Shown piece by piece: positions 24,868-60,517 of a stretch of DNA of 64,000 nt. Position numbers and translations under genes: made by a program. The stretch's first letter is position 1, and the number at the start of each line of letters is the position of its first letter. Location: the IMG/VR virus record IMGVR_UViG_3300045961_000282, positions 62,001 to 126,000 of that record. One strand, 5' to 3'. A model generated the notes under the pieces. That model was given only the letters and a program-made list of their open reading frames with translations, searched no databases and was not told the origin of the DNA.

Positions 24868-24874
24868 CGCTACA

Positions 24875-25333
24875 TCACCCCATCGGGCCGTCGAGCATCG
24901 GGAACGGGCGGGACCCACTCTGCGGCTTGGTCGGCGGGATGTACCCGGCAACAGGCTTCGTCGGGTCGCGGCTCACGTCACCGAGCGCCATGACGTCGCT
25001 GGCCACGGGGCCCTCGACGCGCTTGGGCTCGGGAATGCTACCGTCGCCGTAGACGAACTCCCACTCGGGCGAATGTCCTGACGGGGTGCCGTACGAGGAG
25101 CCGCTCGAAGTGGGTGTCTGGGCGATGATGTTGACCTCGTGGCGCATCGTCATCATCGCCTCGTACACCTCCTTCTCGACCAGCGCCTCCTCGACAATCC
25201 GCTGTTGAATCGCGTTCAGGGCGCGATCGGCTGGGAGAGTCCGGAGGTCTACTCCTCTTCCGATGAAGTGTCCGTCGACGTACGGCCACCATTCGATCGC
25301 CCACTGGCAGAGCGCGACCGCGCCTTGGTAGGG
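24875..25333 (-). CDS. Tail assembly chaperone, frameshifted C-terminal part (GT-like)
   Basis: The -1 frame relative to the upstream chaperone reads ...PYQGAVALCQWAIEWWPYVDG... up to the tape measure. No convincing independent start. Confidence 0.65.
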   Translation of the reverse strand, partial: PYQGAVALCQWAIEWWPYVDGHFIGRGVDLRTLPADRALNAIQQRIVEEALVEKEVYEAMMTMRHEVNIIAQTPTSSGSSYGTPSGHSPEWEFVYGDGSIPEPKRVEGPVASDVMALGDVSRDPTKPVAGYIPPTKPQSGSRPFPMLDGPMG

Positions 25334-43100: not shown

Positions 43101-43646
43101 CGCGGTCATGTAGGCGATCGTCTCGTGCGGGGTGAAGTCGTGGTCCTCGGAGACGTCGAACCCCTCGGCCTTGAGGTCGTTGACCAACTGCGTGCGCATC
43201 TCGGCCAACCCGGGGATGTCCCACGACATCCACAGCACTGGCTTGCCATCCTCCGGCGGGGTGAACGTGCCCCAACCCTGTGCGCGGCCCTCGACCGGCG
43301 GCCAGTCCGACTCGGCCAACCAACGCCGGGTGAAGTCGTGCAGCCGCTGACGCTCCAGACCGTCGGCCTCACCGATGTAGGCCAACGTGATGTGGCGCTC
43401 GTCGAGGGGCAGTTCCTGCGCCTGTGCTGCAGCCGTGGGACCCACGCCGTACTGGCTGGCCACCTCCGGCACGATGCGGAACGCCAACATCGTCTTGACC
43501 GGTGCCTGCGGGTCGCGCTCCCCCTGCCCCTCGTGGTGCACGTCGCGCACGACTCGGCCACGCGGCAGGATGCGGGAGTCGCGGGCGACGAAGGTCGCGA
43601 CCGACCCGTCGGGGTTCCACAGCGGGGTGATCTCGTCGGGAATCAT
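40131..43646 (-). CDS. Multidomain capsid maturation protease with an N-terminal 2H phosphoesterase
   Basis: ATGA-coupled MIPDEI, about 1171 aa. HITL and HETI 2H motifs; PEGIESGDGR...PLLWQ...GHDGA..VGRI...GVSADLD protease core; DDGRVFGH...SGDWR domain; two ~65-aa repeats (G.YPIA.V.DLK.AIK.YGR). Confidence 0.8.
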   Translation of the reverse strand: MIPDEITPLWNPDGSVATFVARDSRILPRGRVVRDVHHEGQGERDPQAPVKTMLAFRIVPEVASQYGVGPTAAAQAQELPLDERHITLAYIGEADGLERQRLHDFTRRWLAESDWPPVEGRAQGWGTFTPPEDGKPVLWMSWDIPGLAEMRTQLVNDLKAEGFDVSEDHDFTPHETIAYMTAPIAELPPFPESQPTQVFNSLVVGEDDFWTEYTFPMAMALRDGATMSLTAALESATTGLEAYSDEELDALIAAGGADRNRGNAEKLRRYWTIGKGGAKIRWNSPGDFDRCVKYLSKHLGPRAKGWCALRHKEMTRMWTGDMKHRIMYGWGGRPGSYWAKVAARSAANANNTVLVATADHSGEAMPDANPILMMLNGQKPAPVTFRIPLLLPEGIESGDGRTFKEGVVELRDLPIPLLWQPNSMQGHDGAAIVGRIDSVERVEGGMGNATGVFDTSPLAMEAVRMIREGFLRGVSADLDRFEAKIKGKGPGTTEAEKKEDDEETVTPDKMDITKGRIMAATLVAKPAFQECRIELDEPAPLPDGEYTQELGPDEQRMLEELATLLREEAQATFAITASGFKAAPIYPPKEWFDNPGLTKPTRLTITDDGRVFGHLAAWHVDHIGMGFGTRPPRSRSGYAYFMTGLVRTKEGEDVRVGQLTLTGGHASLSADAREAVKHYDDTASAWADVAAGEDSHGIWVAGSLRPAVTAEQVRAARASSISGDWRPIQGALELVAACSVNVPGFPLVEARVASGEVLALVAAGLAPLYADQLIALDPQAAALAARRRVFAPLDAKALEVSARMAKARVLSTQPVSVERRKAMAKKGWALPDGAYPIADVADLKRAIKSYGRAKESERAKVRKHIAKRARALGHPELIPEDWKNLSDWSEITLAMQAVDAAEFRDYSSEKREEMAKEGIAMKGGRYPIATVADLKAAIKAYGRGNPADKPEIRKHISKRARALGHPELIPDTWKDLSADVPFVEATEALVASLKTMRRREWDEQKISRDDVGRFRKIYYRLRNSPSSSAPEVRAALKAIKEAERVAEQEGMAEPETAKLAKEALDSAAESKIDERTQSEVIKAAQDMASLMERIEARGPEATIPFDQLPTEIQDAMKRYMKQSNLEERITKHFGPYMSGEVERSVADIVNFLERIIVDSQNYRRGYDTERV

Positions 43647-43960
43647 TTCGACTCCGCCTTCTTCCGGTCGTAGGCGTCCATCTGCTCGATGACGGTCATC
43701 AACGTCTCCTGATCGAGTTCCACGACCGGTGGCGGCTTGATCCCGGTCAGGGCGCGCAGGAAGTTGGGGGCCTCGACCCAGCCGCCGTTCTTGCGCTCGA
43801 AGGCCCGCAGCCCCGAGCCGTCCGGCTTGGGGACGATGGCCAACAGGTTCACGACCGCCGAAGGGTCGATGGAGTCGACCAGAGCGCCAAACCAAGGACT
43901 TATGGGCTGACCAGCCGCTGTCAGAGCCACCTCGGCCCGGCTCCACGTGGTGGCGCTCAT
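43643..43960 (-). CDS. Hypothetical head-module protein
   Basis: ATGA-coupled at both ends. ALVDSIDPSAV..LLAIVP...PPPVVELD. Confidence 0.7.
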   Translation of the reverse strand: MSATTWSRAEVALTAAGQPISPWFGALVDSIDPSAVVNLLAIVPKPDGSGLRAFERKNGGWVEAPNFLRALTGIKPPPVVELDQETLMTVIEQMDAYDRKKAESK

Positions 43961-45183
43961 GCCCCGATCCCCATCTGCTCGCGGGCCCATTCGAGGTAGG
44001 CCTCAAGGCGCGCCTTGGGGTCCTCGACCAACGGCAGCGGCTCGGGCAGTCGCGCCGGGGACTCCTTGGTCACGACCTCGATGCTGTTGGAGTCGACCGT
44101 GCGCCGGTTGCCCTCGTCGTCCTCGATGACCAACTGGCCGTTCTCGATGCCCTTGACGTAGCCGAGGGCGCCGTCCTTGCTGCGCACCCGCGCACCCACC
44201 TTCGCGAACCGGCCGTGCCAGTCGCGCGGCTGGTTCGTGCTGTGGTGGTCAGAGGCTCGCTCTTTTGGGTCGGCATCAGCCGCGGGCTCGGCCCCTTCCT
44301 CGGCGACAGGAGCCGCGGCTGGCTCTCCTGCGGCGGCCAGTGTCATCCGCGTCGAGGCCATCTTCGCCATCGCGAGGCTGCGCTGGCGCACCAGTGCCGC
44401 CTTGGCCATCCGCTCCCGCGCCTCGGCTGCCTCGGCGCTGAAGTCGGTGGCGACCAGTTCGCTCAGCGAGGCGCCGTCGTGCACAACCTCGGCGAGGGCG
44501 TCGCGAACCATACTGGCTTCGAGTTCGTCGTCTTCATCGTCGTCGCCGTCGGGGCCATCGTCGCCCATCGCATCCTCAAGGGCGTCGGCCAACTTCTCTA
44601 CGGTCTCGTCGAGTTGGGTGGCAAGGCCCAGTGCGGTTTCGACGATCTCTTGGAGTTCCTCCGGCTCGTCATTCTCGGGCTCACTGTCGGGCATCTCCAT
44701 GGACTGGACCGACAGTTCGGCTGACCCCGTGACGTCGGGCTCCTCGGAGGTGGCCTGCGGGGCCTGCGGGGTTTCCCCGGCCATCTTGGTGAGGAAGTCG
44801 ATGATCGCGGTCGTTTCCTCGTCGGTGAACTCGAACAGTTCCTCGACGTCGATGTCGGCATCCTCGTCCACCGCCCCGTCGGGATCCTCGGCGGCAGCCA
44901 GCATCGCCACGCAGCGCTGCGCCCACTCCCGCCCGGCGTCCCCGCCATAGAGCCCCGCCTGCCCGGCCCGGTTGGGGTCGTAGCGCCAGTCTCCGGAGAA
45001 GAACCGCAGCATCTCCATCGGAACGCTCAGGTCCACCGGCATGGAGGAGTTGAGCACCTGTGCGACTGACACCGAGGGGGCGTCGCTGATCCCGAGGGCC
45101 TCACCCTGCCGCGCCTTGAGGGCGGCGTCGGCGCGCTGGGCCACCTTCTTGGGGACCCGCAGAGTCCGCTTCTTATTGCTCAT
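43957..45183 (-). CDS. Head-module protein (GGDAG..WA domain, acidic linker, RDxxGRF plus SH3-like domain)
   Basis: Start MSNKKRTL overlaps the upstream stop. LYGGDAGREWA; QPRDWHGRFAKVGARVR. Confidence 0.7.
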   Translation of the reverse strand: MSNKKRTLRVPKKVAQRADAALKARQGEALGISDAPSVSVAQVLNSSMPVDLSVPMEMLRFFSGDWRYDPNRAGQAGLYGGDAGREWAQRCVAMLAAAEDPDGAVDEDADIDVEELFEFTDEETTAIIDFLTKMAGETPQAPQATSEEPDVTGSAELSVQSMEMPDSEPENDEPEELQEIVETALGLATQLDETVEKLADALEDAMGDDGPDGDDDEDDELEASMVRDALAEVVHDGASLSELVATDFSAEAAEARERMAKAALVRQRSLAMAKMASTRMTLAAAGEPAAAPVAEEGAEPAADADPKERASDHHSTNQPRDWHGRFAKVGARVRSKDGALGYVKGIENGQLVIEDDEGNRRTVDSNSIEVVTKESPARLPEPLPLVEDPKARLEAYLEWAREQMGIGA

Positions 45184-45739
45184 CGGCCACATCCTCGTCG
45201 TCGAGTTCCTGCCGTGACAGCCAATCTTGAAGGAACGCGACGCGCTCAGCCCGCTCCTCGGCGGTGTAGGGAATCGCCATCGCTCCGGCGGCGGCGCGGA
45301 ACTCCGCGGCCACGTCGGGCTTCCATGCCTCATCGAGCCCCTCGACGTTGGCGAGGCAGGCCGAGGGGTCATCCATGGCCAGTCGCTCCCGCGCGCGGCG
45401 CACTTGGTCGAGGCGGCCCTGTCGCTCCGGTGACGCCTGTCGGATCGCGGCAGCCAACTGCGCCCGCATGGCATCGATGGCGGGCACAAACTCCATGTCC
45501 AGTTGCACTGGGTCGGAGATGGCAAGGTTGCCGTGGGCGGTTCCGTAGAGTTCGAAAGCCAACTCGTCAGACAGCGGAACGTTGGCCTGTTGGTACAGCG
45601 CATGCATAGCGACCAACGCGGCCTTGGATCCCGGCACTTCGCCGTCGGCCGAGATGATGCGGCCAACCTTGCCGTCAGAGAGGAACGCCAGAGTCGGGGC
45701 TCCGGTGAGCGGGTTCGAGGCAACCAGTGCGGTGACCAT
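45173..45739 (-). CDS. Hypothetical protein (second small gene after the giant ORF)
   Basis: TGATG-coupled MVTALVAS, 188 aa. Confidence 0.7.
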   Translation of the reverse strand: MVTALVASNPLTGAPTLAFLSDGKVGRIISADGEVPGSKAALVAMHALYQQANVPLSDELAFELYGTAHGNLAISDPVQLDMEFVPAIDAMRAQLAAAIRQASPERQGRLDQVRRARERLAMDDPSACLANVEGLDEAWKPDVAAEFRAAAGAMAIPYTAEERAERVAFLQDWLSRQELDDEDVADEQ

Positions 45740-46011
45740 CAGGACAGGCCCTCCCCGGAGACGTTGATGCCGCGGGCGGTCAGCATGGCCATGTAGGCAA
45801 GCCACTCCTCGCGGGACGCCGACACGATGTTGGCGTGCTCCTCGTAGTCGCTCTGCCGCTCGCCGGTCTCGTCATCGACCGACCCACCCGCTCGGTACTC
45901 GGCCGCGGCGATCGGATCGTAGCGATCGACGCCCTGATCCTTGAGCCACTGTGCCCACATGCTCTGCACCTCGGCAATTGTGGCCAGTTGCTCCTGACCG
46001 CTCGCGCTCAC
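45739..46011 (-). CDS. Small acidic protein, candidate immunity protein
   Basis: 90 aa, GTGA-coupled to the stop of the giant ORF. The immunity role is inferred from position only. Confidence 0.65.
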   Translation of the reverse strand: MSASGQEQLATIAEVQSMWAQWLKDQGVDRYDPIAAAEYRAGGSVDDETGERQSDYEEHANIVSASREEWLAYMAMLTARGINVSGEGLS

Positions 46012-49000
46012 ACCACACCTCCGCTCGCTCCGCCGCCCGCAGGGGCGCCCGCCTCAGGTACTGCGCCCTCGGGGACCTCACCCTCGGGGACTTGCGGAGC
46101 GGGGGCCGCGGGGGCTGCTGGCCCACTGCCCCCGCGCTGCGCCTCTGCCTTTCGACGCATGCGCTCCATCCTGCGCATCATCTTCTCGGTGTAGTAGTTC
46201 TCGACGAGGGTGTACAGCCGATCCCTGCGCAGGTTCTTGCGTCCCTGCCATGAATTGCCCAGCATGCCCTTCTTGCCCGCCCATGGCTGCCCAGATTCAT
46301 CGGCTGGGTCGTAGCCGATCTGAGACAACTCGAACGGGGTCGGGAAGTTCTCGTCGCTTGGCGAGGTGTTCTGCATGCGCTCTTGGATCGCGGCAAAGTC
46401 GGCACGGTCCTTGTCCGTCCTCAGGTGCCGTTGGATAGATGACATCAAGTACCGGGCCTGACCGAGAGGGTCTGACTTCCAGCCGAATCCTGCCGTTGCC
46501 CATGCATATCCACCGACTGAGATGTTTGCATGAACATCATAATGCTTGATGCCATTCAGAATGGACCAATCGGACGTCTGTTTCACCAATTGTCCAGCAA
46601 GTCCGGTGTTCTGAACGTCATTATCCATGATCATGTATGCGGCATAAATGCTGGTGTTTTGAACCGTGACGTAGCCGTTTCCGACTCGCGGCATGTCCCG
46701 CAGGACATTTTCGCGCTGCCGTTCAATTGCTTGCGCCAGTTCAGATGGTGAATCAGCATTGAGCGCTTGGCTGATCGCGTCATCACCGACCTTGGCTCGG
46801 CGCAGGGCGTCGGCGATGTCGGATGTTGAAGCAGCATCCATGTCAACGATCCATCGGCTCGCTTCAAGGATCTGTGGTGCGGTCAACTGCAACCCGGAAG
46901 ACCCGACTTGATGCAGTTCGGCCAGCGCCTTCTCGCCGTACGCCTTGCGCGCGGAGCCAAACGCATCAGACAACTTCTTCACATTTTGCCCGACCGCATT
47001 CCACAGATCTTCGATAGATGCGACGTTCCCATCGGAATCGAGAATCGTGGCCCCTCGCGCATAGGACCGCATCAATGAGAAGTCGAACGAGGAGGATCCA
47101 TCCCCTGCATAACTGCTCAGAGCCTTCTGCAATTCACGAAGTTGGTTGTAATTTCCAATCGAGAATCCCGTTTCACCGAGCGGTTTCGATTGGTCCGCTT
47201 CGCTGACGAATTCACGGAACTCGTAGTTGATGTTTCCGTTGCGATCCCGGATCGGGCTTGAGGTGACGACCATTGCCAGCGCCGGGGCACCGGGGCGATC
47301 GGATATCTGAGTCGCCTCAGCAACGGCCCGCAAGGCACGTGTCGAGTTGTCCGCGGTCATGTCATCGAGCCGCGTTGCGGCCCCTGCGCGCTCGAAATCG
47401 TGGCCCAGCGGGTTGAACTGAGCAACCAACTGCTGGATCTCGCGCTTCTTGATCTGCTCGGCGCGGCGGCTCATCACCGACGGGCCATTGAGTTCCCTGA
47501 CCGGGACCCACGAGCGCGACCGCAGGGCGGCGGCGCCGAGGTTGGTTCGGTTGACGCTGGCCAGTGACGCGATCTCGAACGGTGTCGGGAGCCCCTCGAG
47601 GTCGGTGGCATCCTCGAGGTCGCGAACCATATCCGCGATGATCGCCTGCGCCGCTTCGTCGTCGCCCGAATCCCGGGCCGCCCGCGCCAGCATGGCCCGC
47701 ACGATGTCCTTGGTGGAGTCAAAGCCACCCATGGCGATGACGTCCCAGTCGAAGCCCGAGTTCGCCGCCGTGAGCCGCGCCGACGGGGGTGCATCGACAA
47801 TCTGCAGCGACGTTGCGCCGTTGGCGATCGCGTGGCGCTCCGCCGCCTTCAGGGCCTCCTGTTGGGCAAGGCGCACCGACTGCGACGTTCCCGGATCGAT
47901 CCCGACCCTGACGGTCGGAGGAAGGTCGCCGCTGCGGTCGATCTGCAGGGTGAACTTGCCGCCATTTTCGGCGCGGCCTCGCGGCTGGAGGGTCACGGCG
48001 ATGCGCCCGCCGGTCGGGGTCAGTTCGATGCTGTCAATCGACTGAATCCCACGGAACTCGGGGTTGGACAGCAGGTCGGCGAACAACTGCTCGCGAACCG
48101 CGTCGGGGACCGAGGAATCGGCAAGATTGGCGATGGATGGCGCCGACTGCCCTATGTGCATGATCCGGGCCGCTTCGCCCGCCCCGTGGCGACTGCGCAG
48201 GGCGTCGGAGTCAGCGGGACTGAAGGAGGCATTGATCCCCGACGTCCCGAAGTAACGGACTGGGTCGGCGACCAACGGGCTGGACTGCGCCAGCGACAGA
48301 TCGTAACCGCGCTCCCGTCGCACCTCCCCGGTGCGCAGGTCGCGAACTGTCACATACCCCCACGAGGCAGCAGCGTTCGTCCCGGGCTCCGGTTCGGTGC
48401 CAAGAACCACGGCAGACTGGGCGCTTGAGCCATATCCCATCCTTACCGTGTCGCCGACGACCAGACCGTTTCCGCCCCCGTCCGTGACAACGCCATCGGT
48501 CCCGGAAGTTGGTCGACGAACCAGTTGTCCATCGGAATCGACCAAGGCATTGACCTGTGCCTGACGGACTCGCTCGACGTCCATCTCGTCCTGCAGGGTC
48601 CGCATCGCGAACAGCGCCTCGCGGCGTTGCTGCATGGGGGTTGCGGGATCCAAGGCGATGCGCTCGACGACCGCGAGCGCCTGCATGTTCACCTCATGGC
48701 GGGCCGCGTACAGCATCGTGGGTGATGAGAGGCCGTTGGCCGCCGAAATCCCTGTCCGATAGGCCCGCGCAGCGTCCGGATCAACGCTCTCCATGACCCC
48801 AGTGAGGTCGTCGCCATAGCGGTTGATCGCGATCTGCATCAGCGATGAGTTGGCAGCCACCAATCCCGGCGGGACCGTCTGGCCTCGCTCGCGCCGGGCG
48901 ACCATGAGGTTGCGCAGGATCCCATTCGCTCCGACGAGGTCTCCGCCATCGATGGCCCTGCTCGCGACCTGCAGCGCCGACCGCTCTGCCTCACTGACCC

Positions 49001-52000
49001 CATCAGACGCAGCCGCTTGGTCGATGGCCGCCTTCGCAGAATTCCGGCGCGATGTCGCCGAGTAGCCTGAGGGTTGCTGAACTTCCCCAATCCCCCCCAT
49101 CGCGTCGCGGATCGATGCGTAGGCCAAGTTGACCGCATCGGCACGATCTGGGTCATAGCCTTCAAACGAAGAGCCCAGACCGGCGTTGTTCAGCAACGCC
49201 GCGGACGCCCGCTCGAGTTGATCTCGCGCCGTGGCGGCATCGCCGTCGCGCAGAGCGGTCGCTGCGGACTGCAGGACCGTGGAAACGTCAGCATCGGCCG
49301 TGTCCGCGAAGACTGATTGAGCCAGTTCATCGATCTGGTCGGCCTTCTCGGTGAAATCAACCGGGGGTGCCTCGGGAGTCGTTGACTCAGGAACGGTCGC
49401 CTCAGGCTGCGGCTGGTTCGACCCAACCCGCATCCTGCTATCGATCCGGTCGCGCAGGCCGACCGCGACGGACCGCCGGTAGTCACCGTAGGCGAGCGAG
49501 TCGATCACGTCGGTCAGGATGTTGCGCGCGGTGGCTCCGTCGCCGTTGCGCAGCGCGTCCACGGCTCGCTGCCCCATCCTGCGCAGGTCGGCCGGAACGC
49601 CTTGGGCTTCGAGGATTCCGGTTGCCTCGGAGATGAGGTCGCTGTAATCCACCTGCGGCTGAGCCTCGGGAGCCTCGGGCTCGGGAGCCTCGGGAGCCTC
49701 GGGCGCCGTCGGCTCCTCGGGGGCCTCGGGGGCCTCTGGGGCCTCTGGGGCGGCTTCGGGCTCGGGGGCCGGGGGTTCCTCGGGGGTCGGCCTGTCCTGT
49801 GGCGCCTGTCCGCGGGACAGTTCCTCTCGAACCATACGGACGATGTCGGCATCACTGATGGCGCCGTCGACCGCGGGGTTCTCCCAAAGGCGCTCACCCG
49901 GGCGGATGTCAGCGCCGCTGTTGCGGAGGTCCTCGATCGACTCCGGGTCCATCTCATGCAGGACCCCGGCGCGCTCAAGGACGCGCAGGACGCGCTGAAC
50001 CTCGTCGTCGCTCCACTGCGGGAACATGCCCCGGATCTCCGTGAGATCCCAGTTGACGACGCCGTTCTGGCCAACGAGTGCATCGACCGCTTGGGCGACA
50101 TTGGAATCCACCGAAGCGATGTCAAGACCGACCGACTCGCTCTGTGCGTAGGCGCGCACAATCTGATCGGCGATCTCGGCGTCGGTGAGGTTGGCGGCGC
50201 CCGCCCCGTACCCGTACCGCGCCATGCTGTCGCCGATGTCGATCCGCGACAGGACTCCGGCGTCGACCAGTCGGTCCAGCATCCCTTGGGCGCGGGCCAT
50301 GTTCATGTTACCGTACGTCGCCACGAACTCCGGCGTGACCGCGAGGTAATCGCGCAGCGCGGCGGCGAACTGCTGGGCGCGGGCAATCTCGGCGCTGCCG
50401 GGTGCCGACACGGGCAGGCCCGGAACGCCGTCATTGGGATCGCGTCGGTCGGGCATGGCGTCGCGCACGTCACCGTTGGGATCCCACACGGCGAGGGCAT
50501 CGCGCAGTTCTGCATCGCGCGCGTCGCCCGCTTGGCGCAGCCGCCACAGGGCGGCGTCGAACATGATCCGCTGCTCCGCTGAACCGTCAGGGAGTTGCAG
50601 CGCCGCAGCCAGCGTGGCACGGGCGTTCTGGCGATGCCGGTGGGCGGTCGCCTTCGCCGGGTCGCGCGGGGACACCGACATGTTGGTCGGCAGGCCACCC
50701 ATGATGTTCGCCACGCGCGACCGGGTGTCGGCGGCGGCGGCGGCCCAGTCGTTGTCGCCCCAGTGGGAGTCGCGCAGGGCCATCATGCGCCGCACTGCGT
50801 CCGCATCGCCCGCCTGCGACAGCCGCGAGAGGCCGAGGGAGTAGAAGGCCTCGAACTCGCCGAACTGCCCCGCCCGGTAGGCGCGTCGGGCCAGCGCGAA
50901 GGAGTTGGCCGCCTTCCGCCGGGCGTCGGCCTCCTGCCCCTCGCCGAGTTCGGCCACGAGGGCCCGCTGGCGGGTGACCTCATCAGAGATCGAGGCGATC
51001 TCCGCGTCGGTCCACGAAGCCCCCCGGGCGGTCGGGCGGCTCGGGGCGAGGTTGTCGTCGGCCAACCGGAACGTCGGATCGTCAAGGTTGCGCAGCCGGT
51101 CGGGGTTGACCCGAACCCGCGCGGCGTTCATCAAGCCCCGCAACTCCGTAGCGTGCACGAGATCCAGCGCGTTGCGGGCGCGCATCAGGGCGGCCCAGCG
51201 CTTCGCCGAACCCGGCTCAGCGTTCAGCGCATCCCCGAATGCCTTCTTCGCGAAGATCAGGGCCGACCCCGCCTCGCTGCCGCGTCCCATGTAGCGGATC
51301 AGTGCTGCGATCGACCCGCTGATCGCCTCGTCGTCCATGTCCCATGAGGTGTCGCTCAGGGAACGGCCGTGAGCACGATGCCGGATGTCCAGCAACTCAT
51401 CGCGCAGTTGGGCCAGATCGGCATTGTCGCCGGAGCGGCTCGCGGCGCGGTTGAGGCGGTTGATGACCCGCTCCAGCACGGCTTCGCGATCGAAGTTGGT
51501 GGCCGGTCCGAGGTCGCCGCGCAGCAGCCGGTTCAGATCGCGCTGGGCGACGTTGATGGCCGCCTGCACCTGCTGGCTGGTCAGGAATCGGGGGTCGCCC
51601 GCCAGTCCGTTGAGCCGGTCGGCCACGGACTGCAGGCTGTCGACCGAGGATGAGTAGTCAGCCTCATCCATGTAGTCGTCCATGTACCAGTACCCGTCGG
51701 GATCACCCTCGGGGGTCTGGAGGATCCGGTTCCCGGACTCGATCCACTCGCTGGTCGCGTCGGCCTGCTCGCGGGTGTAGTTCTCGAGGCTAACCTGCGG
51801 GTAGTCGTCCAGATAGCGGTTGAGCAGGGCATCGGCCCGTGCTGACGCCTCAAGCAGGCTCACCCGATCGGCTGCGCTGAACGCACCGTTGGCCTCTTGG
51901 GTGAAATGCCGCGACGCGAAGAGCAGCCGGTTGGCGCGGCCACGGTTGGCCCGGCGCGTTCCCAGCGGCTCGGACAGATCACCGATGCTGTCGACCAGTT

Positions 52001-55000
52001 CCTGCCAGTAGCGCTGGACGTTGGGGCGCGCCCCGGACAGCGCCTCAGTGATGCCGGACAACTGATCCGCATAAGGCTGCTGCCGCCACCCTGCAGAGTC
52101 GGTGGCCCGCTCCGCCGAAACCTGCGCCTCCTGCGGGGTGACCGTCGGCGCGGCGTCGGGCTCGTCTCCCGCGTCGGCCATCTGCATCGCCTGCGCGTAG
52201 GCGTCCAGCGCCGCAGGATCGGCGTCCTGCCCTTGCGCGTTGGCCTCCAGCGCCGCGTTCGTCGCGGGGTCGTTGCGCACCGCCTCGGCCGCGTCGGCCT
52301 CGGAGAGGGCGGTTTCCACGTGGCGGGTGGTGGATTCGTCCATCCCCGCCTCGCGCGCCACCTGTGCAACAGACTCACGGGTCGGCTCGGGGGTACTGGC
52401 CTCTGGGGTCGCAGAAACAGCCCCTCGGGGCCCTTCGCCCAACAGCGCATCCGCATACTCGGCACTATCGCTGCCTGCGAGGTCGTTCAAGAACTCGTCG
52501 ACGTTGCCATCGTGCTCATCCATGAGGTTGCGCACGAGCGCATTGCGTTGCCGCTGCGTCAGCGAGTCCCACTGATCCACCGCGTCGCTGATTGCGCCTT
52601 CCGCGCGCAGGTTGATCGGATCTTCGTCCTCGATCGGCGCGACCTCTGCGGCGGGCGCCTGCTGCGCCCCGGTGCGTTCGCGCCGTCGCCGCTCCCGCTG
52701 CAGGTCGCGGCGGTCGCGATTGATCTGGCGCTGCCAGTCGCGTGCCGCTGCCCGGCGCTCGGCCCGGTACTGCCGCGCCGCCCGGCGCTCGGCGGCCAGC
52801 CGTCGGCGCTCGCGGGCCTTGGGCTGGTTGCGCCGGTCGATGCGCGTGCGCGGGTATCCGGCCTTGCGCAGCATGCTGCCGATCCGGCGGCTCTGTGCAC
52901 GGGCCTTGCGGGCGGCGTTGACCTCACCAAGCGCCTCGGCCTCGGCGGCCCAGTCGCTCAACGCCTGCTGCATGTCGGCCAGCGCCTGCGCTGCGGCATC
53001 CTCGTCGCCGTTGGCGAGGGCTTCGCTGTACCGACCGCGCGCGTCATCGAGCCGCGAAGTCGCTCCGCCCGAACGCTCCTCGATCTGCCGCTTCGTCTCC
53101 GCGAGGTACTCGGCGTCCTCGGCGAAGTCGAAGTTGTCGTTGGGGTTACGACCAACCGCCGGGTTCTCGCCCAGCGGCACCCGTGGCGGCCCGTTCTGCT
53201 CGGCCTGCTCCCGGGCAGCGGCAATGTCAGCCGCTTCTTCGAGGGTGTCCGCGGCGTCGTCGAGGGCCCCGGCGACGTTGTCGCTGTCCTGAGCCGCAAT
53301 GGCGCCGTCGTCCACAGCGTTGGCGGCGTCCGACAGGCTGTGGCTGTCGGCGTCGGGGCGGATCGAGCCGTCGTCGCTGACCACCGAGTTGATGGCATCG
53401 CGAGCCGCCTGAACCTCGGGACGCGCGGCAACCTCGGGCTCGGCCTCGACGGCGTCCTCGACGTTGAACAGCGCCATCTGGTTGAGGTCATCGGCTTCGG
53501 CGTCGAACTCGGTGTTCAGCCACGCCCCGCGCGCGTCGTCTTCCTCGGCATCGAAATCTGCGTCGTGCTGGCGCAGGAAGTCGGCCAACTCGGTCCGCAG
53601 CGGGCCCATATGGTTCCGAAGGCCACGCCACGCAGCGAAGTCGTCATCCTCGATGTCATCGAGGCGGGACATCATGCTGTCGATGGTTCCGACGGCTGCG
53701 CGGATGTTGCGGATCGTGTCGTCGCCACTTCCGGCGTCTGCTAGCGCGAGGAAGTCGCTGATCCGACGCATCCGCTCACGCAGGTAGTCATGCGTGAGTT
53801 CGTCGGGGAAGGCGTTGATGGCGTCGCCGATCAAGCCAACCCCGTTGGCCGCGTCGTCGATGTCGATCAGTTGCTCCATCAGGTCGCCCTGAGAAAGGCC
53901 CTGCCATGCACCCATCGCACCTTCGGCGGCCAGATCGGGAAGGACCTCCAGACCCGACTCCTCCAGCGCCTGCAGTTCCTCGTTGCTCAGGCCCTCGGGG
54001 GCGCCAGCGATGTCGACCAGATTCCCGTCGGCGTCATACTCGACCTCGATGCGATCGCCGGGGGACAGTTCGGTTCCGGGCCACTGGCTGGACCAGCCCA
54101 AGGGCACCTCGAAGTAGCGGCGGCCCGGGGCGGGGCGAGCCTCGGCCTCGGGGGCCTCGCCTGCCGTCACCTCTTCGTGGCTGACGATCCGCCCGTCGCG
54201 GCGGACCACCCGGAAGGTCCTGCCGCTTTCGGCTCCCCGGTACGGGTACACCGTGGTGATCTCGCCATCGGGGGTGCGCTGGGTTTCCAGCCACCCGCTG
54301 ATCTCCTCGCCGTCCGGGGTGCGGTAGTTCCCAGTCATTCCCTGAACTGGGCGCTGCTCTTCGGGGGCTTCGGGGATTTCGGCGCGCGGCTCCTCCTCGG
54401 GAATCTCGGCCCGCACCCCCTCGGGGGCCTCTTCATCGACCTCTTCAAGATCCGTCGACTCGAAGGTAGCCAGATCCAGCGTCCGTCGGGCACCGCGCTC
54501 GCGGGCCGCGGCCTCAGCCGCCTCGGGGGTGTCGTAGACGTCGACGATGTCGGCGACGACCTCTCCGGTGTCGGGGTCGACGACGAACGCGACATGCGCG
54601 CCGTTCTCGCCGCTCAACTCCTCCCAGTTGTCGTCGATGAACGTCGCCGCATTGGCCCGCTGGAACTCCGCGAACTGGAACCGCCGCTCATTGCCGCGGG
54701 CAACCGCGATGCCGGACTCGGGGAAAGCCCCCTCGGCGGGGTCGAACGCGACGCCCTGCCGCTCATCGAAGGCACGAATGACGTGCTCGACTGCATCGTT
54801 GGGAACCATATCCTCGTCGGCGTTGACCCGGAGGTGCCTGCGGTGCCGGTCGAGACGCTGGCGGAACTTGCGGTCGGTCTCCTCCTGCTTGGCCCGCTGG
54901 GCCTCAAGGTCGAACGGCTCGACGCCGCGCTCGATGCCGCCGTCGACCGCAGCCTTGAGGATGGCGACCATGTCCTCGACGTCGGTGTCGGCGTGGTGCT

Positions 55001-57938
55001 CGCCCGTGCGGTCGATGCCGTAGAACCGGCGCATCGTGTCCATCTTGTCGTTGCGCGGAACTCCCTCGCCCCGACCGCGCAGGTTCTCGCCATGGAGCGC
55101 GCGGAACACCGGAAGGGTGTCGAGGATGCCGCCCTCAGGCATCCAATCCTGTCCGCCGGTCACACCCAAGTCGCGCAAGCGCTGCCGGATCGGCTCAAGG
55201 TCGACCCCCTCGGACTCCCCTGCGCGAGACGGGTTCATCACCGCGTCGATCATGTCGCGCAGCATCGAGGTGTCGAAGGCGGCGTTCTGCGCCACCACCA
55301 TGTCGGGCCCGATGAACTCGACCATCTCGGGCAGGACTTCCTGCCACGGGCGTTCCTGCGATGCCTCCTCGTCGGTGATGCCGTGAACCTGCTGAGCGAA
55401 CGGGTTGCTCGGCTTCCCGGGGTTCATCCTGAAGACGCGGCGATCGACCTCTTCGCCGTTCTCGAAGCGGATCAGCGCAGCGGAGACGGGGCGGTCTGGA
55501 AGGTCCATGCCCTCGGCGTCGGCCTGCATCCGCTCGCCCGCAAGGCCAGTGGTCTCCAAGTCGAAGCCGACCAAGGATCCATTGTTGATCCGGTCACGCA
55601 GCGCTTCGAGCGAAACAGTCCCATCCTCGTTCTGAATGCCAGCGGCCCGTCCCTGCAGGGCGGGGAACGTGCGGCCGGGCAGGAAGGGCTCCTTCAACTT
55701 GCCACGGACGAACTGCTTGCTCGGCAGCCGCTCGCTGGCCCGCTTGCCAAGGATGCGGGCAGTCTCCACCAAACCCGCAGCGGCGTCGCTGACGTCAACC
55801 GCGAGCCTGCTGTCGTCGCCACCCGACAACCGACGGCGCAGGGCGGCCCGCTGCACGGCGGTGGCCGCGTTGGCAACATCCTTGGCCCACTTGCCGAGAT
55901 CGCTCTCGCGCGCCTCGCTGTCGGCGTCGACTGCGCGCAGGGCGGCCACGGCGTCGGCTGCGTCGGGGTTGTCGGCCACGAACCCGTCGAGCAGCCCGTC
56001 GAGGTTGTCGTAGGCCATGTCGAAGTTGCGCCGCGCCGGGGCGGTGATGTTCTCTAGCCGCTTGTGCATGTCGCGGCTGTCGCGCGCGAACGTCTCCACC
56101 ATGCCTGCGCGCTCTTGAACGCCTGCCGCAACGTCGCGGCGGGCACGATCCTCAGCGGAAACTAGCGCACTGGGCTGCCCGTCGATCTCCGCGATGCGCC
56201 GCTCGGCGGCCTTGCGGGCCCGGTTTGCGGCCAGAGCGGCGCGGTCGAAGACCGTGCTGCGCATCGCCAGCGGCTCGATCTCACCGGACTCGATGTTGCG
56301 CGCCATTGCCTCAAGGGCATTGACATCCTCGGGGCCCAGCGCGTCGACAGTGTCCGGGTCGGTGATCAGCGCCCGGGCGTCGGCGACAGCGTCGTCCGAA
56401 CCATACGGCGAGGTCTCGGGGGCGGCCTCCGGCTCCGACTCGGGAATCTCCGCGACGACCTCGGGCTCGGGGGCTACTTCACCGGCATCCCCGACGCCCT
56501 CAGCGCCTCGGTCACCCTCTGCAGAAACTGCTCCTTCGTCTCCCCCGGGTTCGGCTTCATCAGCACCGGCTGGGGCTGCGCCTTCGGGGCCTTCTCCTCG
56601 TCCACCTTCTTCTCCCTCTGGTTGTGGCTCGGGGGCCGCCGGGGCCTCGGCTTCGGGGGCTTCCTGCGGCTCGGTCGTGGCCCGCTGCTCCGGGCGCGTG
56701 AATGCCCGGATCGTATCCTCGCGGCCACCTGATCCGGCGGCCACGCCGATCTCGTCGATGCGCTCCTGAATGTCCGCAGGCTGGTCCTCGCGGGCGTCGC
56801 GCAGAGCGCGGCGCAGGTTCTCGCGGCGGTCGTCGCCGGGGTCGTTGAGCAGGCCGACGATGGCGTCAGCGACCTTGTTGCGCTGGTCGAAGTCGGGATC
56901 AACGGGGGCGAGGCTGCGGAACAGATCCACCGCCTGTTGCGCCAGCGCGTCATCCCCTTCCTCGGTGGGGATGTCCATCCGGTCGGCGACCTCGCGCAAC
57001 TGGCGGCCGAGGTCGCGGCCCTGCGCGAAGGCGAAGTTCCCGCGCTCGAAGTCATCGGCGATGCGTCGCAGGTTGTCGGCCGCGAACGGATCGACGATCC
57101 CGTCCGCGTTCCTCGCGATGGCCTTGTCGGCGATCTGCAGTGCCCGGGCGAAGCGGTCCTTCTGTCCTGCCGGGGCCATCCGCTGGCGCCGCTTGGCGCC
57201 CTCCATCAGGCGGTTGAGTTCCCGCACCTGCTGCTGCCCGAGCGGCTCGCCGCGCGCGCCCGATCCGTCCCATTTCTCGTAGTCCCCGCCGATCAGGTCC
57301 TCGGGGTCGTTCTCGCCGAGGGCCTCGGCATCATTCGGGTTGTCCGGCAGTTGGGCCCGCCCGCCCGCCTTGGTCCCGGGGTCGGAAACGATCTCCAACT
57401 GGTCCGGGGACAGGCGCACAAACCGCGTCTCGCCGGGCTGCAGGTCATCGGGAACCCCGATTCCCATGCTCTCGATGTCGTCGTTGGTCGGATCACCGCC
57501 GCGCCCGAGATCATTTACTCGGGTGCTGATTTCAACAACAACGTCTTCATTGTTGTTCAATGCGCCCGCAATTCGCCCGTAGGCAACCGCGTCGCGACCA
57601 TCGGGGCGCTTGAAGACGGAGACGATCTGGAACGTCGCCTCTTCCTCGCCGTTCTCGTTGCGCACCCAGTTGGGCTGCTTGCGCCGCCGCGGGCCGATGT
57701 ACTTGAGGAACCGGCCCTTGCGGTCACGCAGCCAGTAGATCTCCTTGAAGTCCGCAATCAGCGCAAGGACCGCGCCGGGCAACGCCCCGCGGCCGACGAA
57801 CTGGGAATCCGTCCCGTAGAAATCGAGGATGTCGAACTCGGTCGCCAGCGGCGGCAGGCCGATCTCCTTCCGTGCCGCGTTGGTGCTTGCGACCATCGAA
57901 TCGAAGCCGAAAACCGGCGAGCGGTCGTCAGAGTGCAC
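46008..57938 (-). CDS. Giant polyvalent head-associated protein (DEDDh 3'-5' exonuclease, wHTH pair, SH3-like, two GNAT-like domains)
   Basis: 3976 aa open frame, GTG start after AGGAG. FDLETTG...HGIT...VAQNAAFD...LDTL...HHADTD (DnaQ-like, ~54950-55590); VQNTGLAG...HANISVGGYAWATAGF (GNAT-like, ~46230-46680). Confidence 0.85.
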   Translation of the reverse strand: MHSDDRSPVFGFDSMVASTNAARKEIGLPPLATEFDILDFYGTDSQFVGRGALPGAVLALIADFKEIYWLRDRKGRFLKYIGPRRRKQPNWVRNENGEEEATFQIVSVFKRPDGRDAVAYGRIAGALNNNEDVVVEISTRVNDLGRGGDPTNDDIESMGIGVPDDLQPGETRFVRLSPDQLEIVSDPGTKAGGRAQLPDNPNDAEALGENDPEDLIGGDYEKWDGSGARGEPLGQQQVRELNRLMEGAKRRQRMAPAGQKDRFARALQIADKAIARNADGIVDPFAADNLRRIADDFERGNFAFAQGRDLGRQLREVADRMDIPTEEGDDALAQQAVDLFRSLAPVDPDFDQRNKVADAIVGLLNDPGDDRRENLRRALRDAREDQPADIQERIDEIGVAAGSGGREDTIRAFTRPEQRATTEPQEAPEAEAPAAPEPQPEGEEGGRGEGPEGAAPAGADEAEPGGDEGAVSAEGDRGAEGVGDAGEVAPEPEVVAEIPESEPEAAPETSPYGSDDAVADARALITDPDTVDALGPEDVNALEAMARNIESGEIEPLAMRSTVFDRAALAANRARKAAERRIAEIDGQPSALVSAEDRARRDVAAGVQERAGMVETFARDSRDMHKRLENITAPARRNFDMAYDNLDGLLDGFVADNPDAADAVAALRAVDADSEARESDLGKWAKDVANAATAVQRAALRRRLSGGDDSRLAVDVSDAAAGLVETARILGKRASERLPSKQFVRGKLKEPFLPGRTFPALQGRAAGIQNEDGTVSLEALRDRINNGSLVGFDLETTGLAGERMQADAEGMDLPDRPVSAALIRFENGEEVDRRVFRMNPGKPSNPFAQQVHGITDEEASQERPWQEVLPEMVEFIGPDMVVAQNAAFDTSMLRDMIDAVMNPSRAGESEGVDLEPIRQRLRDLGVTGGQDWMPEGGILDTLPVFRALHGENLRGRGEGVPRNDKMDTMRRFYGIDRTGEHHADTDVEDMVAILKAAVDGGIERGVEPFDLEAQRAKQEETDRKFRQRLDRHRRHLRVNADEDMVPNDAVEHVIRAFDERQGVAFDPAEGAFPESGIAVARGNERRFQFAEFQRANAATFIDDNWEELSGENGAHVAFVVDPDTGEVVADIVDVYDTPEAAEAAARERGARRTLDLATFESTDLEEVDEEAPEGVRAEIPEEEPRAEIPEAPEEQRPVQGMTGNYRTPDGEEISGWLETQRTPDGEITTVYPYRGAESGRTFRVVRRDGRIVSHEEVTAGEAPEAEARPAPGRRYFEVPLGWSSQWPGTELSPGDRIEVEYDADGNLVDIAGAPEGLSNEELQALEESGLEVLPDLAAEGAMGAWQGLSQGDLMEQLIDIDDAANGVGLIGDAINAFPDELTHDYLRERMRRISDFLALADAGSGDDTIRNIRAAVGTIDSMMSRLDDIEDDDFAAWRGLRNHMGPLRTELADFLRQHDADFDAEEDDARGAWLNTEFDAEADDLNQMALFNVEDAVEAEPEVAARPEVQAARDAINSVVSDDGSIRPDADSHSLSDAANAVDDGAIAAQDSDNVAGALDDAADTLEEAADIAAAREQAEQNGPPRVPLGENPAVGRNPNDNFDFAEDAEYLAETKRQIEERSGGATSRLDDARGRYSEALANGDEDAAAQALADMQQALSDWAAEAEALGEVNAARKARAQSRRIGSMLRKAGYPRTRIDRRNQPKARERRRLAAERRAARQYRAERRAAARDWQRQINRDRRDLQRERRRRERTGAQQAPAAEVAPIEDEDPINLRAEGAISDAVDQWDSLTQRQRNALVRNLMDEHDGNVDEFLNDLAGSDSAEYADALLGEGPRGAVSATPEASTPEPTRESVAQVAREAGMDESTTRHVETALSEADAAEAVRNDPATNAALEANAQGQDADPAALDAYAQAMQMADAGDEPDAAPTVTPQEAQVSAERATDSAGWRQQPYADQLSGITEALSGARPNVQRYWQELVDSIGDLSEPLGTRRANRGRANRLLFASRHFTQEANGAFSAADRVSLLEASARADALLNRYLDDYPQVSLENYTREQADATSEWIESGNRILQTPEGDPDGYWYMDDYMDEADYSSSVDSLQSVADRLNGLAGDPRFLTSQQVQAAINVAQRDLNRLLRGDLGPATNFDREAVLERVINRLNRAASRSGDNADLAQLRDELLDIRHRAHGRSLSDTSWDMDDEAISGSIAALIRYMGRGSEAGSALIFAKKAFGDALNAEPGSAKRWAALMRARNALDLVHATELRGLMNAARVRVNPDRLRNLDDPTFRLADDNLAPSRPTARGASWTDAEIASISDEVTRQRALVAELGEGQEADARRKAANSFALARRAYRAGQFGEFEAFYSLGLSRLSQAGDADAVRRMMALRDSHWGDNDWAAAAADTRSRVANIMGGLPTNMSVSPRDPAKATAHRHRQNARATLAAALQLPDGSAEQRIMFDAALWRLRQAGDARDAELRDALAVWDPNGDVRDAMPDRRDPNDGVPGLPVSAPGSAEIARAQQFAAALRDYLAVTPEFVATYGNMNMARAQGMLDRLVDAGVLSRIDIGDSMARYGYGAGAANLTDAEIADQIVRAYAQSESVGLDIASVDSNVAQAVDALVGQNGVVNWDLTEIRGMFPQWSDDEVQRVLRVLERAGVLHEMDPESIEDLRNSGADIRPGERLWENPAVDGAISDADIVRMVREELSRGQAPQDRPTPEEPPAPEPEAAPEAPEAPEAPEEPTAPEAPEAPEPEAPEAQPQVDYSDLISEATGILEAQGVPADLRRMGQRAVDALRNGDGATARNILTDVIDSLAYGDYRRSVAVGLRDRIDSRMRVGSNQPQPEATVPESTTPEAPPVDFTEKADQIDELAQSVFADTADADVSTVLQSAATALRDGDAATARDQLERASAALLNNAGLGSSFEGYDPDRADAVNLAYASIRDAMGGIGEVQQPSGYSATSRRNSAKAAIDQAAASDGVSEAERSALQVASRAIDGGDLVGANGILRNLMVARRERGQTVPPGLVAANSSLMQIAINRYGDDLTGVMESVDPDAARAYRTGISAANGLSSPTMLYAARHEVNMQALAVVERIALDPATPMQQRREALFAMRTLQDEMDVERVRQAQVNALVDSDGQLVRRPTSGTDGVVTDGGGNGLVVGDTVRMGYGSSAQSAVVLGTEPEPGTNAAASWGYVTVRDLRTGEVRRERGYDLSLAQSSPLVADPVRYFGTSGINASFSPADSDALRSRHGAGEAARIMHIGQSAPSIANLADSSVPDAVREQLFADLLSNPEFRGIQSIDSIELTPTGGRIAVTLQPRGRAENGGKFTLQIDRSGDLPPTVRVGIDPGTSQSVRLAQQEALKAAERHAIANGATSLQIVDAPPSARLTAANSGFDWDVIAMGGFDSTKDIVRAMLARAARDSGDDEAAQAIIADMVRDLEDATDLEGLPTPFEIASLASVNRTNLGAAALRSRSWVPVRELNGPSVMSRRAEQIKKREIQQLVAQFNPLGHDFERAGAATRLDDMTADNSTRALRAVAEATQISDRPGAPALAMVVTSSPIRDRNGNINYEFREFVSEADQSKPLGETGFSIGNYNQLRELQKALSSYAGDGSSSFDFSLMRSYARGATILDSDGNVASIEDLWNAVGQNVKKLSDAFGSARKAYGEKALAELHQVGSSGLQLTAPQILEASRWIVDMDAASTSDIADALRRAKVGDDAISQALNADSPSELAQAIERQRENVLRDMPRVGNGYVTVQNTSIYAAYMIMDNDVQNTGLAGQLVKQTSDWSILNGIKHYDVHANISVGGYAWATAGFGWKSDPLGQARYLMSSIQRHLRTDKDRADFAAIQERMQNTSPSDENFPTPFELSQIGYDPADESGQPWAGKKGMLGNSWQGRKNLRRDRLYTLVENYYTEKMMRRMERMRRKAEAQRGGSGPAAPAAPAPQVPEGEVPEGAVPEAGAPAGGGASGGVV
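56474..56605 (-). CDS. Nested 43-aa gene in the +1 frame of the giant gene
   Basis: AGGGAG-N6-GTG start; MDEEKAPKAQPQPVLMKPNPGETKEQFLQRVTEALRASGMPVK then TAG. Host-frame codons become A/T-ending over exactly this interval. Confidence 0.65.
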   Translation of the reverse strand: MDEEKAPKAQPQPVLMKPNPGETKEQFLQRVTEALRASGMPVK

Positions 57939-58473
57939 CAGACTCTCCTGTCGTACCGTTGCTGTTCGTCATGCCGTCACGCTGTGCTTCACAGATGTTT
58001 GAGAGTAATGCGTCGAACTGATCCGCCGAAGGCATTTCCGCGATCCCCTGCTCGGCGTCAAAGCGACGCACCATCGAATCCGCCCACCGCTTGCCCGGGT
58101 CGCCGCCCCAAAGCAGCCACGCCACGTAGCCCGGGGTCTCCGAGCCCTTCTTGGCCCAGTCGGGTTTGCGGTCCACCGCGTGCCGGGCGAAGTACGCATG
58201 CATCTTCCGTATGGTTTCCCGACTACATGACTGCCCCGCAGCCAACTGCTTGCCGCGCGCCCGGCCGACGTCGGTCAGGTTCTTTCCGCCGCGGCCCTCC
58301 TTGAGCAGGTCGAGGCCGCGCTGCGCAGCCTTCTGCACGTCCTTCGGCGGGGCGTAGGTGTCGCTGGCCGCCGCCGTGATGGGCGCTACGGCTGCCAGTG
58401 GGGCGCCGATCTTGGCCATCATCCGCCGCCGCAGGTCGTCGCTGCCGATCTGGTAGCCGGTCTGGCTGGTCAT
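57928..58473 (-). CDS. Head-associated protein (WLLWGGDPGxxWA family)
   Basis: ATGA-coupled to the portal. PPKDVQKAAQRGL...VGRARGKQLA...TIRKMHAYFARH...VAWLLWGGDPGKRWA. Confidence 0.75.
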   Translation of the reverse strand: MTSQTGYQIGSDDLRRRMMAKIGAPLAAVAPITAAASDTYAPPKDVQKAAQRGLDLLKEGRGGKNLTDVGRARGKQLAAGQSCSRETIRKMHAYFARHAVDRKPDWAKKGSETPGYVAWLLWGGDPGKRWADSMVRRFDAEQGIAEMPSADQFDALLSNICEAQRDGMTNSNGTTGESGAL

Positions 58474-60215: not shown

Positions 60216-60517
60216 CAGAGCCTCGTCGAGATCATGCCGGTCACTGCTGAGGCTGTGAGCATTCGTGCCACCGGCTCCCATGTCGTTGGCGAGACCCGCC
60301 GGGCGACGACGACGGCCGCTCCGGCCCAGATGCTCACGCACCACGGGCAGGTGAACAGGTATCCGATCTTGCTGTCGGCAGGATCGTGCCTGTCCCACAC
60401 CCAGTCGCGCACGGGTGCAGCGATCTCGTCCTCGATCAGAAGGCGGGTCAGTCGATATGTCGCTAAGGCGTCCACGACCAACGCAAGGCCGCTGCCACCA
60501 GAGTTGAGGGTACCCAC
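60215..60517 (-). CDS. DUF1360-like membrane protein
   Basis: LATYRLTRLL.ED.I..PVR...YLFTCPWCVSIW. Confidence 0.75.
   Translation of the reverse strand: MGTLNSGGSGLALVVDALATYRLTRLLIEDEIAAPVRDWVWDRHDPADSKIGYLFTCPWCVSIWAGAAVVVARRVSPTTWEPVARMLTASAVTGMISTRL

Follow-up and report, generated by a model that had tools for sequence, protein, structure and literature searches.

What is a gene of 12 kb doing among the head genes of a phage? The question is raised by a stretch of DNA of 64,000 nucleotides (hereafter the window), which comprises bases 62001-126000 of the 206,257-bp IMG/VR virus record IMGVR_UViG_3300045961_000282 (CheckV completeness 99%). An earlier note, made from the letters of the window, had described a giant gene next to the portal gene and had proposed that it encodes an effector polyprotein, the variable tip of which is coupled to small immunity-like genes. 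As described below, the gene is real, and we consider it probable that its product (the giant, P0001) is a polyvalent cargo protein, packaged in the virion, that delivers an exonuclease and an acetyltransferase early in infection, with two lineage-specific companion genes (g90 and g188) encoded behind it. The coordinates of all features are collected in Table 1.

A single gene of 3,976 codons

The GC content of the window is ~68%. High-GC genomes are rich in long spurious open reading frames (ORFs), and several ORFs of more than 600 aa overlap the giant on the opposite strand; the giant might accordingly be imagined not to be a single gene, being either a chance ORF of this kind or a fusion created by mis-assembly. 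This view is effectively refuted, and the probability left to it is negligible. In a frame analysis of third-position GC (GC3), the signal was confined to the giant's single frame across the full 12 kb; the domain matches and the homologues fall in that same frame, and the junction of stop, ribosome-binding site (RBS) and start at the end of the gene is kept in relatives. Because of the single-frame GC3 signal, and because homologues of the last 950-1,600 aa of the protein are present on five independent metagenome contigs, we conclude that the giant is a real gene and not a high-GC artefact: the minus strand of positions 46008-57938 encodes one protein of 3,976 aa. The 12-kb gene that had been noticed at the portal-adjacent slot was thereby confirmed.

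GNAT modules and an exonuclease

The tip of the giant had been called GNAT-like from its letters, and homology confirmed this. A hidden Markov model (HMM) of the family, built without the window's sequences, matched the tip (GNAT copy 2) with an E-value of 1.6e-45 and a second, degenerate module (copy 1) with 1.5e-10; copy 1 was also matched by BLASTP (~3e-4) to the GNAT copies of a five-GNAT protein, P0003. Motif A of the tip, Q-N-T-G-L-A, aligns to the family consensus Q-G-Q-G-F-A (in GNATs Q/R-x-x-G-x-G/A, beta4-alpha3). When a profile of the module was compared with the PDB, GNATs exclusively were recovered, aligned at the acetyl-CoA motif (best E 0.002); the window's own GNAT copy alone stayed below the Pfam threshold. 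The AlphaFold2 (AF2) model of the tip module had a mean predicted local distance difference test score (pLDDT) of 85.7, and among viral models the whole module was matched in phage proteins, one of which is annotated as head morphogenesis. The per-domain Foldseek comparison suggested in the earlier note was thus informative for the tip, which retrieved GNATs over the acetyl-CoA core, but not for residues 2860-3760, the model of which gave no usable match. The designation GNAT-like is correct; a complete GNAT fold and an acetyltransferase activity, as predicted from the alignments and the model, are putative.

The family to which the tip belongs is found mainly on head proteins. A HMMER search with residues 2777-3976 against 1.84 billion representatives returned 452 proteins, nearly all of them matching residues ~3761-3906, and in 96 of the 150 best matches the module lies no more than 30 residues from the C-terminus. 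Among 49 mid-size carriers, 26 are MuF-type: Phage_Mu_F was detected in 11, VG15 (which, going by its name, we take to be the mycobacteriophage L5 gp15 type) in nine and Phage_min_cap2 in six. Pfam Acetyltransf_1 was reached by eight of the 49, and an ADP-ribosyltransferase (ART) domain is present in two. Larger carriers contain two to five GNAT copies, with Acetyltransf_1 matches of up to 1.4e-20, plus a zincin-like peptidase (Peptidase_Mx) or an ART domain. The carriers from cultured phages bear annotations of head morphogenesis or minor head protein. The sole match of the tip in a tblastn search of phage records was to Microbacterium phage Jera gp5, at its C-terminus (pairwise E 3e-11); this protein is encoded next to the portal, contains Phage_min_cap2 and matches Acetyltransf_1 weakly. 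As fusion to MuF-type head proteins is typical of this GNAT family, packaging of the giant in the capsid has good support from comparison. Scans of IMG/VR with the tip, with g188 and with the C-terminus of g408 (a further downstream gene), and one scan of a JGI metagenome, yielded no match.

The second enzymatic signature is that of a DEDDh exonuclease. RNase_T (PF00929) was the only above-threshold Pfam domain in the giant (residues 790-991, 9.2e-12, 46.2 bits against a cut-off of 24), and the region also matches phrog_192 (1.4e-26), the PolC exonuclease structure 2p1j in the PDB (1.2e-6) and the DEDD families of NCBIfam. The catalytic residues of Exo I (D-x-E), Exo II (D) and Exo III (H-x4-D) are complete, in FDLETTG, NAAFD and HHADTD, respectively, with an insertion of ~50 aa separating Exo II from Exo III. 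The unnamed module of ~95 aa that follows the exonuclease recurs at the extreme C-terminus of P0003 (BLASTP, 38.5% identity, E 5e-10). The giant therefore contains at least two distinct effector-type domains, namely the DEDDh exonuclease and two GNAT modules, plus this shared module.

Approximately 80% of the giant lies outside known domains, and this part is acidic and mostly helical. An AF2 model of residues 2860-3760, computed with five sequences, reached a pLDDT of 60.5, and its few matches to SH3-like barrels are a hint only. Word-based searches with the whole protein and with its N-terminus found no match, and the 50,697 phage records searched by megablast and tblastn contained nothing beyond generic exonuclease matches and Jera gp5. 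Protein-atlas look-alikes gave a weak GNAT lead for the C-terminus and none for the N-terminus or g188. Per-segment Pfam and NCBIfam matches (CUE, UPF0147, DinB_2) were rejected as sub-threshold noise.

Relatives, companion genes and the head operon

The portal protein of the window is 44-54% identical to those of Actinomycetia phage DSL-LC01, of ~190-kb Microbacterium and Arthrobacter phages and of many IMG/VR contigs, with 44-51% for DSL-LC01 and the Microbacterium and Arthrobacter phages, and 37-39% identical to those of Gordonia phages; many Mycobacterium phage records match as well, below 60% identity. Nearly all of these portal relatives have an ORF of 2,000 to more than 3,000 aa one or two genes past the portal. 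The giant showed no similarity, by BLASTP or phmmer, to the syntenic giants of DSL-LC01, Microbacterium phage A3Wally and 80 IMG/VR loci. The 18 syntenic giants that were scanned contain a UvrD-type helicase (seven), an RNase_T exonuclease (seven), a complete DnaG primase (one), KTSC (three), PI3/PI4-kinase-like (three), ART (one) and WYL (one) domains, and the same GNAT module as the window's tip is present in three syntenic giants. Judging from these matches, the post-portal slot is a clade-wide place for shuffled polyvalent proteins (primase, helicase, exonuclease, kinase-like, ART, GNAT). DSL-LC01 (with a 3,289-aa gene), A3Wally (gp85) and ~60 IMG/VR contigs resemble the window in the slot, in the size and polyvalent content of the protein and in an N-terminal R-D-x-x-G-R-F module, described below; they differ in their downstream small genes, which are unrelated to g90 and g188. 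A3Wally gp86, equal to g188 in size and position, was considered as its counterpart and rejected, the sequences being unrelated. The IMG/VR loci L004-L083 are freshwater actinophage contigs, with a giant at, for example, L004:5855-14524.

Closer relatives were reached via the g188 protein (57-77% identity) and via P0002, the giant of contig L085. Five contigs (L085-L091) have a common order of giant, a 90-103-aa gene, a 186-191-aa gene, one or more g408 homologues and a ~106-aa gene; in L086, the sole contig reaching further, a 2H protein comes next and then a 709-aa gene in the position of the capsid gene. The giants of L086-L089 are colinear with that of the window through the last residue (46-52% identity), and the two GNAT blocks are their best conserved parts (48-65%, vs 24-41% elsewhere). 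P0002 (L085:15-6398), a more distant relative, aligns over residues 2370-3909; its GNAT is degenerate, with motif A lost, and is followed by ~650 extra residues. By reading, these residues appear to form helical repeats (D-P-x-L-x-x-R-F-D-x-L-like) that are not found in the window's giant.

Despite the altered C-terminus of the giant in L085, homologues of g90, g188 and g408 are still encoded downstream of it, that of g188 with 32% identity. The g90 homologues lie directly behind the giant in L085, L086, L087 and L090, with the motifs S-D-Y-E-E-H and A-M-L-x-A-R-G-I conserved, and the g188 homologues are invariably in the same position. The comparison of C-termini among relatives, which had been proposed as a check, thus revealed an end that is conserved in L086-L089 and that differs in L085, where the same small genes are found. 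With relatives colinear to the end and conservation highest in the GNAT blocks, the tip is not polymorphic; the variable C-terminal effector that had been expected did not materialize. Likewise, because g90 and g188 have homologues in L085, where the C-terminus differs, they do not track the tip, as genes for tip-coupled immunity had been supposed to do. No family match was found for g90, and no family, fold or look-alike for g188; neither fits a known immunity family. As far as sequence comparison can tell, the two are conserved companions specific to the lineage and not demonstrable immunity genes; possible roles are those of assembly or holding factors, or of additional proteins inside the head, in preference to tip-specific immunity.

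The Pro/Glu/Ala-rich (PEAPE) linkers and the AT-richer 3' part of the gene, both described earlier, were found again, the linkers at the positions listed in Table 1. The AT-richer stretch (residues ~3510-3810, GC 0.51-0.59 vs ~0.68) spans the helical region preceding the tip and the first half of the tip GNAT module, and a dip of weaker depth is present in two relatives, L086 and L087. A recently acquired toxin cassette was rejected as its origin, as the dip recurs in these two contigs and the region is conserved in close relatives; the stretch is an old acquisition at most. Lysines are very scarce in the giant, and its net charge is strongly negative save for an Arg-rich island of 75 residues (1701-1775). 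Self-BLAST detected no internal repeats at E <= 0.01. At the end of the giant, GGAGGTGTGGTGTGA is identical across the window, L086 and L087. The giants end identically in G-G-V-V because the RBS and GTG start of the following gene are embedded there, and this C-terminus was for the same reason rejected as a conserved signal.

All genes around the giant are on the minus strand, in the order portal, g181, giant, g90, g188, g408, a 115-aa gene, the 2H protein and the major capsid protein, and the giant is co-transcribed, with overlapping starts and stops, with portal, head and capsid genes. Its GTG start lies 5 nt past AGGAGAG. The overlap is 11 nt at the junctions of g181 with the giant (the giant's start overlapping the g181 stop) and of g188 with the next gene, and the other junctions are GTGTGA or TGATG. 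The overlaps reported at g90 and g188 (GTGTGA and TGATG) are therefore present, but since overlapping starts occur throughout the operon, translational coupling is not special to these two genes. The giant does lie between portal and 'protease', but the 181-aa gene separates it from the portal, and the 408-aa and 115-aa genes are located between g188 and the 'protease'. This last label, applied to the ~1,169-aa head protein, comes solely from PHROG and from the annotation of relatives. The sole firm domain of the protein is a 2H phosphoesterase (2'-5' RNA ligase / cyclic phosphodiesterase, residues ~78-181), which is fused to a region homologous to the 'capsid maturation protease' genes of relatives; for 2H fusions of such type, degradation of nucleotide defence signals has been suggested (PMC5512222).

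Two further observations concern the neighbourhood. In DSL-LC01 (L003:35369-37204) and other relatives, a 612-aa gene is encoded downstream of the giant, and its N-terminal ~100 aa are homologous to the g181 protein; on this homology, the g181 segment has moved across the giant gene between lineages. A second very long ORF (18529-24951, minus strand, 2,140 aa) is located in the downstream tail region and possibly encodes a tape measure or another large virion protein.

A short motif, R-D-x-x-G-R-F/W (more fully Q-P-R-D-x-x-G-R-W/F), with glycines or a small beta module behind it, recurs in the head module. Of its five occurrences in the six frames of the genome, three are in frame in head-module genes, namely at ~57716-57736 (giant, residues 71-77), ~44205-44226 (C-terminus of g408) and ~40604-40625 (C-terminus of the 2H protein); by a rough hand estimate, chance alone would give ~0.01 in those 5,553 residues. 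The motif was found, in one copy each, in 13 of the 18 syntenic giants (at about residue 190-220 in 12 and at about residue 45 in one), near residue 30 in A3Wally gp85 and in the first post-portal gene of DSL-LC01, at L002 nt 23978 and L003 nt 21845, and in L085-L090, and it is kept by all g408 homologues. In a multi-GNAT protein, P0004, three of four copies are located 12-28 residues past a GNAT unit and the fourth is N-terminal. An hhalign comparison of giant residues 31-175 with a profile of the motif module gave a probability of 83% (E 8.8e-6). The module has no Pfam model and no mention in the searchable literature. One speculative proposal, which we regard as a possibility of low probability, is that the motif and its beta module are an undescribed, MuF-independent signal for capsid loading or processing, and that g90 and g188 are dedicated loading or holding factors for the 430-kDa cargo.

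Table 1. Positions in the window of the giant, its parts and the neighbouring genes.
Feature	Coordinates	Strand	Residues and remarks
Portal protein	58470..60398	-	phrog_776, 3e-99
g181, 181 aa	57928..58473	-	phrog_2859; between portal and giant
Giant gene P0001	46008..57938	-	3,976 codons open; 3,976 aa; 430 kDa; pI 4.6; no Cys
R-D-x-x-G-R-F motif and small beta module	57513..57737	-	motif, residues 71-77; module, residues ~68-142; giant N-terminus
Linker 1, Pro/Glu/Ala/Gly-rich, acidic	56403..56678	-	residues ~421-512
Predicted DEDDh (DnaQ/RNase T-like) 3'-5' exonuclease domain	54888..55583	-	residues 786-1017
Unnamed ~95-aa module	54471..54755	-	residues 1062-1156, just past exonuclease
Linker, Pro/Glu/Ala-rich		-	residues ~1165-1200 of giant
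Linker 3, PEAPE-type	49653..49826	-	residues ~2705-2762
Putative small beta-barrel (SH3/Tudor/KOW-like) domain	48285..48548	-	residues ~3131-3218; low-confidence model
GNAT module copy 1, degenerate	47487..47858	-	residues 3361-3484; motif A and GGY-W-A lost
GNAT module copy 2 ('tip')	46227..46658	-	residues 3761-3904; Q-N-T-G-L-A, GGYAWA, GFGW and PTPFE kept
Linker, Pro/Glu/Ala-rich		-	residues ~3937-3976 of giant
Basic helix and Pro/Ala-rich tail	46011..46226	-	last G-G-V-V codons hold RBS and GTG start of next gene
g90, acidic 90-aa protein	45739..46011	-	GTG start within GTGTGA, GGAGG ahead
g188, acidic 188-aa protein	45173..45739	-	start within TGATG
g408, 408 aa	43957..45183	-	C-terminal ~100 aa: H-H-x3-Q-P-R-D-W-H-G-R-F-A and beta module
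115-aa gene	43643..43990	-	between g408 and 2H head protein
2H head protein, ~1,169 aa	40131..43640 (start approximate)	-	2H phosphoesterase domain
Major capsid protein	37824..39821	-	

Precedents and possible functions

Very large proteins are known from other phage capsids. The virion RNA polymerase of coliphage N4 (N4 vRNAP) has a size of ~3,500 aa. It is packaged (PMC5512222), and a polyvalent protein of 2,811 aa, gp47, was detected by proteomics in the virions of phi24B (bioRxiv 10.64898/2026.04.10.717836). The two are precedents for capsid transport of proteins of ~3,000-3,500 aa and for their release into the host; they differ from the giant in having unrelated sequences and domains, and neither is known with this GNAT or with a DEDDh exonuclease. 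Polyvalent proteins as a class are multi-domain proteins encoded in virion modules, for which packaging and injection have been proposed; protein-modifying domains typical of them include GNAT and ART (Iyer, Burroughs, Anand, de Souza & Aravind 2017, PMC5512222). The giant resembles them in its several effector-type domains, GNAT included, and in its location among the virion genes of a portal-terminase phage, and its relatives join the same GNAT to ART and to a zincin-like peptidase. It differs from them in that GNAT was the sole catalogued domain detected, with no match to LPD, MuF, MPTase or ART, in a DEDDh exonuclease that is not a listed hallmark, the word appearing in that paper's reference list only, in its ~80% of orphan sequence and in being larger than most members. 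Compared to proteins of the MuF/SPP1 gp7/L5 gp15 type, such as Jera gp5, it has the same GNAT family as a C-terminal module in the same portal-adjacent slot, whereas the ~350-aa MuF-type anchor is replaced by ~3,700 aa that include the exonuclease and the degenerate second GNAT. The giant is a new, unusually large and very divergent polyvalent protein; the class and the packaging idea have been known since 2017, and no new principle is involved. Of the effector polyprotein first suggested, the multi-domain polyvalent protein in the head module stands, while membership in the MuF toxins is not supported, no MuF having been found in the genome.

If the giant is a packaged cargo, it would be made late and loaded into the prohead, possibly via its N-terminal R-D-x-x-G-R-F/beta module instead of MuF, and would exit the capsid together with the DNA. 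At the outset of the next infection, its enzymes would acetylate host proteins and trim, in the 3'-5' direction, host or defence-related nucleic acid; cleavage of the linkers by the prohead protease is a possible, putative step. Several points weigh against this account. Packaging of the giant, like that of its sequence relatives, is argued from comparison, and searches of the giant revealed neither MuF or LPD nor any other domain known for capsid targeting; confidence in the N-terminal module, which is based on one short motif and the hhalign match, is moderate. For some 3,000 residues, neither a homologue beyond the lineage nor a confident fold was found. The solved structures matched by the tip model are GNATs only, but over an acetyl-CoA core of 47-84 residues and with E >= 0.16, the modelled segment possibly omitting N-terminal strands. 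Finally, the closest counterparts of the exonuclease are proofreading domains of replication, and primase or helicase is present in syntenic giants, so that the protein could serve to jump-start replication instead of counter-defence.

A MuF-type polymorphic toxin, with a C-terminal GNAT neutralized by the 90-aa (and/or the 188-aa) protein as immunity, would share with the giant a position in the head module, a C-terminal enzymatic domain and a small ORF directly behind it; GNAT toxins with antitoxins do exist (TacT and AtaT, which are among the partial fold matches), and the tip region is AT-richer. We nevertheless consider this reading very unlikely. Phage_Mu_F (PF04233) and Phage_min_cap2 (PF06152) are absent across the 206-kb genome, no MuF Pfam hit was obtained in the giant, in which the earlier note had not recognized a MuF domain either, and HMMs of the N-terminal domains of the GNAT carriers did not match it. 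The tip is colinear among relatives and their best-conserved part, the small genes do not co-vary with it, as their homologues also accompany a giant that has a different C-terminus and a degenerate GNAT, and they have no match to known immunity families. Moreover, temperate phages are the source from which MuF toxins have been described (Jamet et al. 2017, PMC5576092), whereas no tyrosine or serine integrase was found in the 99%-complete record.

The main rival to packaged enzymatic cargo is a mainly structural role as an internal-head or ejection protein (an inner body, a scaffold-like filler or a conduit for DNA through the thick actinobacterial envelope), with the enzymes as minor passengers. 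Such a role, which phi24B gp47 has been proposed to have as a conduit, would fit the ~80% of the giant that is acidic, helical, Cys-free and devoid of enzymatic signatures, its location in the head-assembly operon, and a slot gene that is conserved across the clade in size and not in sequence. We judge it a credible minority possibility, improbable on the whole: the GNAT modules and not the helical parts are best conserved among relatives, the exonuclease and GNAT copy 2 have kept their catalytic motifs, and the syntenic giants are enzyme-rich. It also overlaps with the cargo reading, as both need packaging. Less probable still is a late multi-enzyme protein that is not packaged and acts in the producing cell, for example in DNA processing or in modification of phage or host proteins during assembly. 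The resemblance of the DEDDh exonuclease to replication proofreaders and the lack of a recognized capsid-targeting domain speak for it; the position of the gene between portal and capsid, with overlapping starts, the typical fusion of the GNAT family to MuF-type head proteins and the clade-wide occupation of the slot by polyvalent giants speak against it.

Packaged enzymatic cargo is thus the reading that we favour. If the giant is indeed packaged, it would be among the largest proteins in any phage capsid and a test case for the delivery of enzymes by actinophages ahead of gene expression. The locus links a widespread, unnamed GNAT family, most of whose 452 database members are fused to head proteins of the MuF type, with a clade-wide 'giant after portal'. 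The clade, which comprises freshwater and soil actinophages, offers cloneable domains for assays of host takeover and counter-defence, together with a candidate loading motif.

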